Sequence record: OM728297.1
Length of the DNA: 64,000 nucleotides
Strand: one strand, 5' to 3'
In this document: in pieces, positions 9,540 to 23,367 of the stretch
How positions within the stretch are numbered: position 1 is the first letter of the stretch
How the letters are laid out: each line of letters begins with the position of its first letter
The notes under the pieces: model-generated
What the model was told of the DNA's origin: nothing
What the model saw: only the letters and a program-made list of their open reading frames with translations
Databases searched by the model: none
Position numbers and translations under genes: made by a program

Positions 9540-10580
9540 TTAAGGAAGTGTTATTCCTTTTGTTAATTCAATTTTAGATTTTTCTACCCCATAATCTTTT
9601 ACTATCTTATTGTAAAAGATATTAAGACCATTAAATCTTGCAAGCCTATTATTCTTAATAATATACTTATAAAAATCTAAGGTAACATCTTTATCTGAAT
9701 ATATTTCAATATCTACATTCAAGAGTGATAATGATGCTAGGTGATCTAAAACAAGTAAAAAGGATGTTCCATTACCAGAAACGTATAAAGGTTTGTCGTC
9801 TTTGTTATAGATATGATTGTTTACCCCAATCAAATCTATGATTCCCTCAGTCATGATAATTTTATGTTCTGATTCAGACAAGTCTAATTTTTTCTTTAAA
9901 GCATATAGCTTTTTTGATTCTACCATATCAGGAAACAACGAAAAATTATGATAACGAAATCCAGTAATTTTTGGATCAAGACTTCTACAGATGATAGTAT
10001 TCTTATCTGCCGTTAGAAAACCTATAGAATGTTCTTGTACCTTTTTAAATAAATTCTTTTGTTTATCATTTTTAATTCTCTTTGTAATATCGATATTATT
10101 ATTCTTGAAGAAATCAATTGGATTTAAGACAATTTTATACTTCTCTAGATCACTCTCAACAAAATCAATTTTTAATCTATCGGATAGGTATCTTATTTTC
10201 TTATTCTCCAATTCTGTATACTGATTAGGATAGAAATTTATTATCCTATCATTATTAAAATAATTAATTTCACTACCATATTTATATGATAATTTCTTTT
10301 TATAAGATATATTAGCTTCATTAATGTGACTTATTAAATTATAGTCAGCAATTTTAAGTCTGCTTAGGAAATTTGATGTTATAATTCCACTAGAATGACA
10401 CTTCTGACAGTAATATTTATATGGCGCTCTATTCATTATGTAAAAGTGAGCACTATTTGGATCTTTAGTACTGTCTCCACAGAAAATACACCTAATAAAA
10501 ATCTCATCTTTTTTTCCTGATAATCCACAAACACGTAGTTTAGATTTTAGATGTGAATACAAGAGGTTATTGTTCATCAA
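9540..10580 (-). CDS. DNA primase (Zn ribbon + TOPRIM)
   Basis: CIFCGDS...HFYI...YYCQKC Zn ribbon; TEGIIDLIG and YSDKD TOPRIM acids. Confidence 0.85.
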   Translation of the reverse strand: MMNNNLLYSHLKSKLRVCGLSGKKDEIFIRCIFCGDSTKDPNSAHFYIMNRAPYKYYCQKCHSSGIITSNFLSRLKIADYNLISHINEANISYKKKLSYKYGSEINYFNNDRIINFYPNQYTELENKKIRYLSDRLKIDFVESDLEKYKIVLNPIDFFKNNNIDITKRIKNDKQKNLFKKVQEHSIGFLTADKNTIICRSLDPKITGFRYHNFSLFPDMVESKKLYALKKKLDLSESEHKIIMTEGIIDLIGVNNHIYNKDDKPLYVSGNGTSFLLVLDHLASLSLLNVDIEIYSDKDVTLDFYKYIIKNNRLARFNGLNIFYNKIVKDYGVEKSKIELTKGITLP

Positions 10581-10653
10581 ATCCTTCTCCCATAGTTTAG
10601 TACTAAAAAACTGTTAAATTATCTCTTTAAAAGATCTTCAAAATAAAAAATTT

Positions 10654-20798: not shown

Positions 20799-20938
20799 TA
20801 ATTAAACCTCCATTAAAATAAGTATAGTGGATATACTTATTTTATCTTTGTTAATTTCCAATACATCTGTCACTAATTATCTAAAATTTTTAGTAAATTA
20901 GTAACAAAAGATTGACTTATACTCAGGAGGTTAACATA

Positions 20939-21460
20939 ATGAAAAAGAGATTATTAGTTATTGCTGGACCATCAGGCTGTGGAAAGAATTATATCACTGA
21001 TTTATTAATTGGTACTTATCCAGAATTATTTCAACAGCTTCCACAATATACTACTAGGGAGAAGAGAACACCAGATGAGAATACTTATCACTTTATTAGT
21101 AAGTCTCATTATGATGTAATTGAACATGCATTAATTGCTAAAACTGAAATTAATGGATATCATTACGGGACAGTTCCAAGCTTTGAAGAAAATAAAATCG
21201 GTATTATTATTGCTAATAAAAAAGGAATTGAGAGTTTGAGAGAATACCTTTCTAATAACACTGATAATGTAGAGGTATTTTATTTGGGAATTGATTCGGA
21301 GCAACCAAAAGAGAGAGATGAAAGAACTAAAGAATATGTCGCAAATGAAAGAAAAGAATTAAAACCAATTATTAATGATTGGTTAGTCAATATTCCACCC
21401 TATAATTATATTACTGCGGAAGATGTTTATCAATACTTAGAGAATAAAAAGTTTATTTAA
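20939..21460 (+). CDS. Guanylate kinase-like nucleoside monophosphate kinase
   Basis: GPSGCGK P-loop, YTTREKR, YHFIS, YHYGT; start moved to ATG 20939 behind GGAGG. Confidence 0.85.
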   Translation: MKKRLLVIAGPSGCGKNYITDLLIGTYPELFQQLPQYTTREKRTPDENTYHFISKSHYDVIEHALIAKTEINGYHYGTVPSFEENKIGIIIANKKGIESLREYLSNNTDNVEVFYLGIDSEQPKERDERTKEYVANERKELKPIINDWLVNIPPYNYITAEDVYQYLENKKFI

Positions 21461-21465
21461 ACATA

Positions 21466-21477
21466 AACAATCGATTA
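21466..21477 (+). promoter_or_regulatory. Late promoter inside a hairpin arm
   Basis: AACA ATCGAT TA overlapping the 13-bp inverted repeat 21469-21500. Confidence 0.55.
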
Positions 21478-21527
21478 TAGGTTTATTCCTATAATCGATT
21501 TAGTTTGTCATAGGGGGAGGTTGAATT

Positions 21528-22295
21528 ATGACAAACAATTTATACCAAAAACATAATTATCTAAATAAAAGAATTAGTTATCTCAAGAATAATATTATAA
21601 GAGAATATGATATGACCAATGCTGGCGTCAATATTCTACGGAAAAATAATGTTATTACAGAAGAAGAATATCGACATTTAAATTCAATGGAAAAATTAAA
21701 AAAGAATAAAACAGTTGGCTTGTTCTTAAAAAAGAATCCTGATATTAGTGAAGCATTGATCAATGAGTTTGTTTTAATTAGGAAAGAGTTATTTGAGAAG
21801 AATAATATTGATGATGATGATATCTTATCAATTAAAAAAGATGCAGTTTTTATCATTAATAAAAAGTTAACCAATTTAGAATTAAACGAATATTATAAAT
21901 TCCAAGAAAAGAATAGGTATATTAGTTATATTAATATTGATAATAAAGAGTTTTATTATAAATCAGATAGAACTCTAGATATTAAGGGTTATAGTAAGGA
22001 AATAAAGGAATTCCATAAGGATTACTTATTTAAAGATTTAGAAGAACTTCTTTTCCTAGATACACATAATGAAGAAAATGCACTATTTGAGAAATTAATA
22101 CAACTTAAATATAATTTCGTAACCAGAGAATTACCTTATCAGTACTATCTAGATTTAATTTATGGTAAATATTTATATGGTATTTTAAATCATATGTATT
22201 ACTTGGACGAAATAACAGAAGATTTAAAAAAATATGTTCTAATCAATAACAACCTTAATTTCTTACTTAGAGTGATAAATATTCTATTAAAATGA
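21528..22295 (+). CDS. Minimal family-B DNA polymerase-like palm protein
   Basis: IREYDMTNAG (motif A-like), LSIKKDAVFI (motif C-like), LDIKG (thumb entry); only 255 aa, no exonuclease domain. Confidence 0.55.
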   Translation: MTNNLYQKHNYLNKRISYLKNNIIREYDMTNAGVNILRKNNVITEEEYRHLNSMEKLKKNKTVGLFLKKNPDISEALINEFVLIRKELFEKNNIDDDDILSIKKDAVFIINKKLTNLELNEYYKFQEKNRYISYINIDNKEFYYKSDRTLDIKGYSKEIKEFHKDYLFKDLEELLFLDTHNEENALFEKLIQLKYNFVTRELPYQYYLDLIYGKYLYGILNHMYYLDEITEDLKKYVLINNNLNFLLRVINILLK

Positions 22296-22330
22296 TTAAA
22301 ACAGTAGAGTTTCAGTCTACTGTTTTAATC
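22294..22330. terminator. Bidirectional terminator between convergent genes
   Basis: GATTAAAACAGTAGA/TCTACTGTTTTAATC, 7-nt loop. Confidence 0.7.
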
Positions 22331-22336
22331 GTTATA

Positions 22337-22833: not shown

Positions 22834-23367
22834 TTATTCTCCATTTCTTATTTTTAAAGCACGTTCTTTATATTCAACAGCAAGACTATCTGCCATTTCT
22901 TGGTAGTAAGTATATGGATCATCTTTTAATGTAATGTTCTTTCCTTTGTGACCTCTTAACCAATTAAACTGTAATATGATACGTTTCCTAGCAAAATAAA
23001 TTTTATATTCATTTAATAATTTCCATAAATCTAGATTTTTTATTTCCCCAGAAGAATTTCTCCATCCATTTTTAATCCATTTATTTAATCTATCTCTAGC
23101 CCCTAGTATAGTATATTCTGAATCTGATATAATTTCAATGACTCCTATTTCATTAGGATTCTTTTCAACAAAATCTTTCATTTCTTTTAACCCTAAAATT
23201 ACACCCATTAATTCATTATAATTATTTGTTGATTTATCAAAAGCTTTTAATCGTTTACCTATTAATTGAAATTCTTCATTTACAAATAATGTTGCACATG
23301 TACCAAGAGCATCTGGTTTACCATTATGAAATGAAGCGGCATCTGAGAAAATATAAATCTTTTTCAT
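22834..23367 (-). CDS. rnhA: Ribonuclease HI
   Basis: FSDAA, TNNYNEL, ISDSEY, WIKNGW, NLDLW, WLRGH, MADSLA: D-E-D-D set intact. Confidence 0.93.
   Translation of the reverse strand: MKKIYIFSDAASFHNGKPDALGTCATLFVNEEFQLIGKRLKAFDKSTNNYNELMGVILGLKEMKDFVEKNPNEIGVIEIISDSEYTILGARDRLNKWIKNGWRNSSGEIKNLDLWKLLNEYKIYFARKRIILQFNWLRGHKGKNITLKDDPYTYYQEMADSLAVEYKERALKIRNGE

Follow-up and report, generated by a model that had tools for sequence, protein, structure and literature searches.

A predicted miniature polymerase of the family B type encoded by uracil-DNA jumbo phages

The 64,000 nucleotides of sequence record OM728297.1 analyzed here (the window) contain, at positions 21528 to 22295 of the plus strand, an open reading frame (ORF) for a protein of 255 amino acids, gp239, that we predict to be a miniature DNA polymerase of the family B type (PolB) and probably an active accessory enzyme. 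The ORF begins with ATG, with the ribosome-binding site GGGGGAGG 8 nt upstream, and its product is 100% identical to a "hypothetical protein" of Bacillus phage AR9, and likewise of PBS1 and Goe21, all uracil-DNA jumbo phages of the genus Takahashivirus. It follows a guanylate kinase gene (AR9 gp238; 20912 to 21460, plus strand; PF00625) in the same transcription unit, and on its other side lie the convergent membrane protein gene gp240 and a gene for RNase HI (AR9 gp241; 22834 to 23367, minus strand; PF00075, E 1.4e-20). For the gp239 gene and its upstream region, AR9 coordinates are window coordinates plus 183708. This offset changes by 2 nt from gp239 to the RNase H gene (AR9 206544-207077), so the window genome is not letter-for-letter AR9 KU878088 despite the 100% identical gp239. 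A preliminary description of the window, drawn up from the sequence alone, had recognized the 255 amino acid ORF and likened its product to a PolB palm, with short fingers between motifs A and C and a thumb entry after them; the ORF stands as described, and the analyses below bear out the likeness.

gp239 has no match in Pfam at E<=10. It matches phrog_21037 over its full length (E 3e-127, residues 1-255 on profile positions 1-257), an entry that carries no annotated function. A profile search of 1.84 billion representatives recovered 1,130 clusters at 50% identity with E<=1e-3, and 516 at E<=1e-30; the 150 family members listed from this search are 226 to 280 amino acids long. Word-based searches gave 26 and 232 members, none with a Pfam domain or an informative name, and homologs were about 225-297 amino acids long in all of the more than 250 seen. 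The polymerase families PF00136, PF03175 and PF20286 gave no match at E<=10 to gp239 or to any of the 150 members, among which Pfam matches were scattered and attributable to chance. Literature searches, incomplete in coverage and not proof of novelty, returned no account of gp239 or of any family of mini-PolB proteins. The family is not visible to Pfam and is unannotated in PHROGs and GenBank; gp239 defines a large, unnamed family of jumbo-phage proteins.

An AlphaFold2 model of gp239, built from a 20-sequence alignment, had a mean predicted local distance difference test (pLDDT) score of 94.5 and a predicted template modelling score of 0.86, with all five models at a pLDDT of at least 93.6. 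The model consists of a long strand (residues 18-29), four helices (32-91), a beta-hairpin (99-103 and 106-110), three strands (124-153) and a mostly helical C-terminal part (157-254). Foldseek searches of the PDB with this model gave 24 matches at E<=1e-3, all 24 to PolB enzymes (KOD, Tgo, Pfu, Pol alpha, and Pol epsilon in replisomes) or to herpesvirus UL8; the Foldseek probability was 1.00. By VIA-align, model residues 7 to 255 superpose on residues 386 to 746 of KOD (Z 12.3, 239 residues, root mean square deviation 3.9 A), with UL8 (Z 11.5-11.9), Pol alpha (11.5), RB69 gp43 (11.1) and E. coli Pol II (10.9) close behind. A fold scan independent of Foldseek, covering 48,161 representative chains, placed PolB-type chains in all of its best 19 positions (Z 11.5 to 6.5); family A polymerases reached only Z 5.5-5.9, over gp239 residues 1-145. 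The next unrelated matches in the scan, CARD domains at Z <=6.5, tie with the weakest PolB rows and involve a helical sub-segment of about 66 residues. Language-model features, used as a lead only, had PF00136 and PF03175 as the nearest named clusters to gp239. A relationship to Y-family polymerases was also considered, given the likeness of SI..DA in gp239 to the SIDEA motif and a similar core size, and was rejected, as no Y-family chain was among the 50 matches listed from the fold scan.

The agreement of three structure searches suggests that gp239 is a complete palm, fingers and thumb of the PolB type. In the predicted structure the right-hand core has a PolB-type palm, helical fingers and a thumb, and the architecture superposes on the polymerase half of PolB enzymes (KOD/Tgo, RB69/T4 gp43, Pol alpha and Pol II) over the whole of gp239, with Z of 10-12. 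The palm would be formed by residues 7-45 and 71-155, the fingers by a two-helix stub at about residues 45-70, and the thumb by the remaining 100 residues. The alignment is to the polymerase half alone; there is no N-terminal or 3'-5' exonuclease domain, as the preliminary description had also noted.

Conservation was assessed in an alignment of 174 sequences, most of them 25-35% identical to gp239, and in a separate one of 150 (about 30% identity). In the larger alignment E26, D28, G33, K56, G64, N92, K103, D105, F125, E141, K153, Y207 and N242 are 96-100% conserved, and A106 95%. In the smaller one D28, G64, D105, K153 and Y207 are invariant, and E26, G33, K56, K103, K128, Y131 and E141 are conserved in at least 90% of the homologs. 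The conserved residues fall into five collinear segments, each in the expected secondary-structure element (coordinates below are all on the plus strand). Three of these contain the stretches on which the preliminary description had relied, IREYDMTNAG (residues 24-33), LSIKKDAVFI (100-109) and LDIKG (150-154), all present in the order it gave. The single Asp that it had marked in each of motifs A and C (D28 and D105) proves to be kept in 172/174 and 173/174 sequences, respectively. It had overlooked a recognizable motif B-like segment (K56-x3-N60-x3-G64) and the Gly at the putative steric-gate position.

The motif A segment, E-Y-D28-M-T-N-A32-G33 (residues 26-33; 21603 to 21626), lies where strand 18-29 ends and helix 32-39 starts. 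E26 is conserved at 98%, D28 at 99-100%, A32 at 89% and G33 at 97%, and the family pattern reads E-Y-D28-x-x-x-A32-G33-x-[SN]-I-[LI]-[KR]. D28 falls on D411 and G33 on Y416 in a sub-alignment to RB69 residues 406-427, which by itself is not significant; the downstream S-I-I-R is matched as well. The SLYPS sequence of PolB is not present. By spacing and this non-significant alignment, A32-G33 replaces Leu-Tyr, and the conserved G33 would occupy the position of the steric-gate Tyr (D+5). The motif B-like segment, K56-x2-[RK]59-N60-x3-G64-K65 (residues 56-65; 21693 to 21722), lies on helix 56-69 of the model, the second of the two short helices of the fingers. K56 is conserved at 97%, R/K59 at 95%, N60 at 58% and G64 at 100%. 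The K-x3-N-x3-G spacing is that of Kx3NSxYG in PolB (K557, N561 and G565 of T4), with the Ser and Tyr replaced by Ile/Val. The motif C hairpin, I-L-S-I-K103-K104-D105-A-V-F (residues 99-108; 21822 to 21851), spans strands 99-103 and 106-110; K103 is conserved at 96%, D105 at 99-100% and A106 at 95%. Here PolB enzymes have DTD(S), and the DxD signature has been taken as diagnostic of PolB (PMC7824862); the gp239 hairpin reads S-I-K-K-D-A, with one Asp and with K103 at the position of the first.

Beyond motif C, the segment F125..K128-N-R-Y131 (residues 125-131; 21900 to 21920) is read, from conservation and spacing, as the counterpart of PolB KKRY, with F125 conserved at 97%, K128 at 91% and Y131 at 87% in the larger alignment. 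LDIKG (21975 to 21989; K153 99-100%, G154 91%) would mark the palm-to-thumb junction. It aligns to KIMG of RB69, in an alignment that is not significant, and recurs identically at residues 437-441 of AR9 gp152, the C-terminal half of the phage's own replicative polymerase (see below). Four of the five relatives of gp152 that have this region carry [LV]DxKG, and one reads LGVSG. From the Tyr of KNxY to the Gly of LDIKG there are 23 residues in gp239 (Y131-G154), compared with 21 in both T4 gp43 (Y705-G726) and AR9 gp152 (Y420-G441). The predicted thumb (residues 157-255; 21996 to 22292), assigned from the model's secondary structure and the PolB thumb alignment, is short and mostly helical and includes the invariant Y207 and N242.

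Like PolB enzymes, gp239 is predicted to have one Asp where the first palm strand ends and another at the hairpin turn, and its K-x3-N-x3-G, K-x-x-Y and KG segments follow in the same order. It differs from them in size, with 255 amino acids compared with roughly 360-500 for the same three subdomains (about 360 in KOD), and in the distances from motif A to motif B (28 residues, 149 in T4) and from motif C to KxxY (23 residues, 82 in T4). It also differs in having x-A-G for SLYPS and apparently no steric-gate Tyr, K-K-D for DTD, fingers of two short helices, no N-terminal or exonuclease domain and no PF00136 match. In the arrangement that we propose, D28 and D105 would be juxtaposed to form a two-carboxylate active site. 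E26, two residues before D28 on the same face of the strand, could be a third acidic ligand and is the likely candidate for it. The Lys, Asn and Gly of motif B would be kept on the fingers helix, and KNxY and LDxKG would correspond to segments that in PolB enzymes hold the primer-template. Such a protein would most likely be an active, non-proofreading, template-directed nucleotidyl transferase.

The replicative polymerase of AR9 is encoded elsewhere, at loci that fall outside the window. AR9 gp132 (553 amino acids; L003:8408-10072, minus strand) combines the exonuclease domain of PolB with a canonical FDLSSLYPS motif A; its alignment to RB69 covers residues 106-434, at which point gp132 stops. 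AR9 gp152 (640 amino acids; L003:25148-27073, minus strand) matches PF00136 from the motif B region onward as well as PF20286 (divergent PolB), and carries motif B, an insert of about 190 residues, VVDTDS, KKSY and LDIKG. The AR9 PolB is split after motif A, and its two parts correspond to DNAP-N and DNAP-C of the chimalliviruses, the split polymerase that, together with an RNase H-clamp protein, was recently shown to constitute the chimallivirus replicase (PMC13648698). The replicase being a separate, split enzyme, gp239 is a third, extra PolB-derived protein. A protein with PF20286 is likewise encoded elsewhere in all five complete metagenomic jumbo genomes that have a gp239 homolog. We considered whether gp239 might be the missing C-terminal half of gp132 and rejected this, as motifs B and C are already provided by gp152, and gp239 possesses a motif A strand of its own. 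The split polymerases of phiKZ-type jumbo phages and gp239 nevertheless resemble each other: they occur in the same phages, belong to the same superfamily, share the LDxKG junction and a KKxY-type motif, and, in the case of DNAP-C, have no exonuclease fused to the catalytic part. DNAP-C is, however, much larger (640-760 amino acids), with the insert of about 190 residues between motifs B and C, a canonical DTDS, and a motif A provided by DNAP-N, whereas gp239 has its own motif A strand, lacks the insert and stands alone.

AR9 also encodes a conventional primase. gp225 (9555 to 10592, minus strand) has an N-terminal Zn ribbon (CPYCG...H...C.KC) followed by Toprim EGxxD and DxD motifs, and its profile matches T4 gp61 (E 5.7e-4), which upholds its annotation as a DNA primase. 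A primase of this type is present in AR9 and in four of the five metagenomic genomes, and was not found in phiKZ, Goslar, SPN3US or 201phi2-1. The view that phiKZ-group phages lack primases thus does not apply to the AR9-type branch. The preliminary description had listed primer synthesis among possible activities of gp239; with a primase of the gp61/DnaG type already present in the same genome, a primase is less necessary and the odds of gp239 being one are lower, and primer extension or gap filling fits better. More generally, the lack of proofreading and the small thumb, the complete split replicase and conventional primase alongside, and the linkage and common expression pattern with RNase H described below together suggest a distributive accessory polymerase for primer extension or gap filling.

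Taken together, these observations lead us to propose that gp239 is a miniature, PolB-derived polymerase, active and accessory, for primer extension or gap filling, a reading to which we assign a probability of about 60%. It would work beside the split replicase gp132 and gp152, and its likely task in lagging-strand maturation or repair would be to extend primers or to fill short gaps. Several points weigh against this proposal. Sequence and profile searches of the PDB gave only non-significant RB69 matches (E 0.3-0.6) and a chance match to a Toxin B repeat, and comparison of the gp239 family by hhalign with alignments of T4-like gp43 and of DNAP-C gave probabilities below 1%; the latter comparison placed motif C wrongly and was not used for residue mapping. 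As no sequence-only method reaches significance, the motif equivalences rest on predicted fold, spacing and short matches. The analyses establish the ORF, its predicted fold, conservation, distribution and expression, from which we infer the residue equivalences, the juxtaposition of D28 and D105, catalytic activity and a biological role. In addition, of the PolB DTD a single Asp is left, next to two Lys, the very short fingers have none of the basic residues of the first helix, and UL8, an inactive PolB relic, scores as high (Z 11.9) as active enzymes. The recurrent gene neighbors of the family, described below, include kinase-like and virion genes, so that much of the linkage reflects clade synteny and not a dedicated operon.

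Without a significant link to PolB at the sequence level, the resemblance might be an artefact of structure prediction or of fold convergence, with gp239 unrelated to polymerases. This we regard as very improbable, given the high and uniform confidence of the five models, a match spanning 239 of the 255 residues, an unbiased scan whose best 19 chains are exclusively of the PolB type while the CARD matches cover only about 66 helical residues, and five collinear motifs in the right secondary-structure elements.

UL8, an accessory subunit of the herpesvirus helicase-primase, presents a different alternative, in which gp239 would be a non-catalytic PolB relic that organizes the primase-helicase or the replisome and whose charged residues bind DNA or partner proteins. 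The C-terminal half of UL8 matches gp239 as well as the active enzymes do, over model residues 2 to 255. Like gp239, moreover, UL8 resembles PolB without being the replicase, and occurs alongside both the true replicase and a primase of its virus. The co-occurrence of the gp239 family with the gp61-type primase, both absent from phiKZ, Goslar, SPN3US and 201phi2-1, and the degraded DTD motif are also in keeping with a scaffold. UL8 itself, however, has about 750 amino acids, retains N-terminal and exonuclease-like domains in degenerate form, and has been described as lacking catalytic activity. A relic of this kind would keep the PolB fold and lose the catalytic carboxylates, and in gp239 D28 and D105 are invariant and the substrate-binding residues are kept. 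Inactivated relics do not typically retain catalytic and substrate-binding positions, and invariance in the gp239 family is found exactly there (both Asp residues, the motif B Lys and Gly, KNxY and KG). Since the invariant residues sit at the metal-, nucleotide- and primer-template-binding positions of PolB, we argue for an active polymerase and consider a scaffold role rather unlikely.

Other unusual or very small polymerases offer partial parallels to gp239. The PolB enzymes of pipolins (piPolB) and of protein-primed phi29 initiate in unusual ways, and phi29 polymerase matches the model at Z 8.0; both are full-size, with active exonuclease, canonical motifs and terminal protein region (TPR) insertions, none of which gp239 has. 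Pol X of African swine fever virus (ASFV) and the split, minimal Pol III alpha of group 2.2 jumbo phages (PMC7824862) are likewise very small second polymerases beside a replicase, and have been proposed to act in gap filling, repair or one-strand synthesis. Their folds are of the Pol-beta type and unrelated to gp239, and the analogy is functional only. The preliminary description had further suggested a terminal transferase or a signalling nucleotidyltransferase, and this found no support. The small size of gp239, the absence of a proofreading domain and the unusual pair of Lys residues beside the catalytic Asp would suit a template-independent enzyme of this sort. Known signalling nucleotidyltransferases and terminal transferases, however, have the Pol-beta fold, whereas the predicted palm of gp239 is of the PolB type; the segments that hold the primer-template and a full thumb are kept; and no defence or signalling genes lie near gp239. 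We therefore view either activity as highly unlikely.

Expression of the gene has been mapped in AR9. An AR9 late promoter, recognized by the non-virion RNA polymerase (nvRNAP), with the sequence AACA-N6-TA is found at 21466 to 21477 (plus strand), and its start site, 21477, lies 51 nt before the ATG. The preliminary description had pointed to this motif at 21466; the site is an exact match to the primary late transcription start site of g239 determined by differential RNA sequencing at AR9 205185, with a 51 nt untranslated leader (Lavysh et al. 2017, Table S3, PMC5312081). The bare motif occurs no more often than by chance in the window (77 matches, 84 expected), so the promoter is validated by the published mapping and not by its sequence. 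The promoter is a weak one, with a step height of 24 and a step factor of 1.44 (Table S3, PMC5312081), and g239 transcripts rise from 60.7 to 308.8 and 1533 fragments per kilobase per million at 5, 20 and 40 min. Corresponding values are 323, 725 and 1580 for RNase H gp241 and 33, 301 and 662 for ligase. This is the "continuously expressed" pattern that the authors assigned to genes of replication and nucleotide metabolism (PMC5312081), and the RNase H, ligase, helicase and replicative polymerase genes of AR9 share it. In phiR1-37 the ortholog g276 is constitutively expressed and is served by a verified promoter of its own. The earlier view of gp239 as a late gene, and as such odd for replication, is thus correct as to the promoter; its weakness, the presence of transcript already at 5 min and the pattern shared with replication genes speak against the rest. 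Nor is a late promoter odd for an AR9 replication gene, because helicase g007 and primase g225 have one too.

The gene is bounded by terminators on both sides. A 13-bp hairpin after the guanylate kinase gene g238 (21469 to 21500, plus strand; -19.7 kcal/mol, z -7.2) was found by terminator scan, and the late promoter and its start site are embedded in the 5' arm of this hairpin. Read-through transcripts hold the full g238 terminator, and those that start at 21477 keep only a 5-bp stem and cannot form it. At the other end, a strong bidirectional terminator (22291 to 22333), with 15-18 bp stems on both strands, separates gp239 from the convergent gp240.

Among isolated phages, tblastn detected the gp239 family in AR9, PBS1, BpSp, the Staphylococcus S6/MarsHill group, Listeria LPJP1, Yersinia phiR1-37 (g276) and the Fusobacterium JD-Fnp phages; g276 of phiR1-37 is also the best structural match to gp239 in BFVD (TM 0.80). 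A profile of the 150 sequences found no homolog in phiKZ, SPN3US or 201phi2-1, and a weak Goslar match (E 0.009) turned out to be due to chance. The family is thus absent from the four chimalliviruses tested, though that group has DNAP-N and DNAP-C (PMC13648698). Co-occurrence with dCMP/dCTP deaminase, examined for a link to uracil-DNA, amounted to weak matches in three of the five metagenomic genomes and speaks neither for nor against such a link.

Gene neighborhoods were compared at 80 IMG/VR loci, most of them on contigs of 100-330 kb. At 37 of the 80 an RNase H gene is no more than 6 kb from the mini-PolB gene; it is upstream on the same strand at 35 of these 37 and directly adjacent at 7. 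In Firmicutes phages the neighbors are guanylate kinase, dCMP deaminase and RNase H; in Staphylococcus phage MarsHill the mini-PolB gene is flanked by guanylate kinase on one side and by a convergent pair of dCMP deaminase and RNase H genes on the other, much as in AR9. Other recurrent neighbors are a beta-like subunit of the multisubunit RNA polymerase, a virion protein, phrog_12252 (AR9 gp242) and a kinase-like protein. In the clade of locus L012 the order is an nvRNAP subunit, a primase homolog, two unassigned ORFs, RNase H, mini-PolB and an endonuclease. gp239 would thus appear to share an expression class, and often a gene block, with RNase H, and this recurrent linkage together with the common expression pattern is one of the points behind the accessory role in lagging-strand maturation or repair proposed above.

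Two of these neighbors have features of their own. In some uncultured jumbo phages with RNase H directly upstream of mini-PolB (L012:5122-5982:+, L009:5112-5936:+ and L016:4753-5649:+) the protein is 275-299 amino acids long. The RNase H domain occupies its C-terminal half (133-284 in L012), preceded by some 130 residues of an uncharacterised N-terminal extension; AR9 RNase H has only 177 amino acids. The commonest upstream neighbor in uncultured relatives (cluster C1; L047:2794-4359:+ and 63 other loci) is a protein of about 500 amino acids with protein-kinase-like motifs (G-T-N-R, V-x-K-V-A, D...N and D-F-P), then a four-Cys ribbon and a variable C-terminus. It matched neither Pfam nor any isolated phage, and its appearance is that of a kinase rather than of a replication protein.

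The recurrence of RNase H, and in the L012 clade of a block with both a primase homolog and RNase H, also bears on the possibility that gp239 is a ribonucleotide-using PolB derivative, which makes RNA or mixed primers or extends them with ribonucleoside triphosphates (rNTPs) beside the phage primase, in the manner of Pol alpha. Small residues at the steric-gate position of PolB enzymes strongly raise the use of rNTPs; this position would be Gly in 97% of family members, with Ala before it, which predicts weak discrimination against ribonucleotides. Pol alpha is itself among the best structural matches (Z 11.5). On the other hand, the phage already has gp225, a Zn ribbon and Toprim primase of the T4 gp61/DnaG type, the steric-gate assignment derives from spacing and a non-significant alignment, and we identified in gp239 no feature that is known to permit de novo initiation. 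We assign this alternative a low probability, well behind that of a polymerase for primer extension or gap filling.

A broader suggestion, which we make tentatively and with considerable doubt, is that of a class of PolB proteins of about 255 residues that have lost both the steric gate (Tyr to Gly) and DTD, that carry out ribonucleotide-tolerant or RNA-synthesizing primer extension, and that, in the uracil-DNA jumbo phages of the AR9 and phiR1-37 types, have RNase H and a gp61-type primase as their partners. If true, no smaller self-contained PolB-type polymerase would be known, and phages would have a counterpart of the lagging-strand step performed by Pol alpha. The absence of both the gp239 family and the gp61-type primase from the four nucleus-forming chimalliviruses tested offers a testable difference between the groups. 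Phi29 polymerase has about 570 amino acids and most other PolB enzymes at least 750. If gp239 is active, it would, with some 255, be the most compact PolB-type core described, would reveal the dispensable parts of the PolB scaffold, and would provide a natural experiment on removal of the steric gate. It would also equip a large clade of jumbo phages, most of them uncultured, with a second polymerase for replication and repair; this clade, with 1,130 or more clusters at 50% identity, takes in each of the three lineages of uracil-DNA jumbo phages that have isolates (PBS1/AR9, S6-like and phiR1-37).

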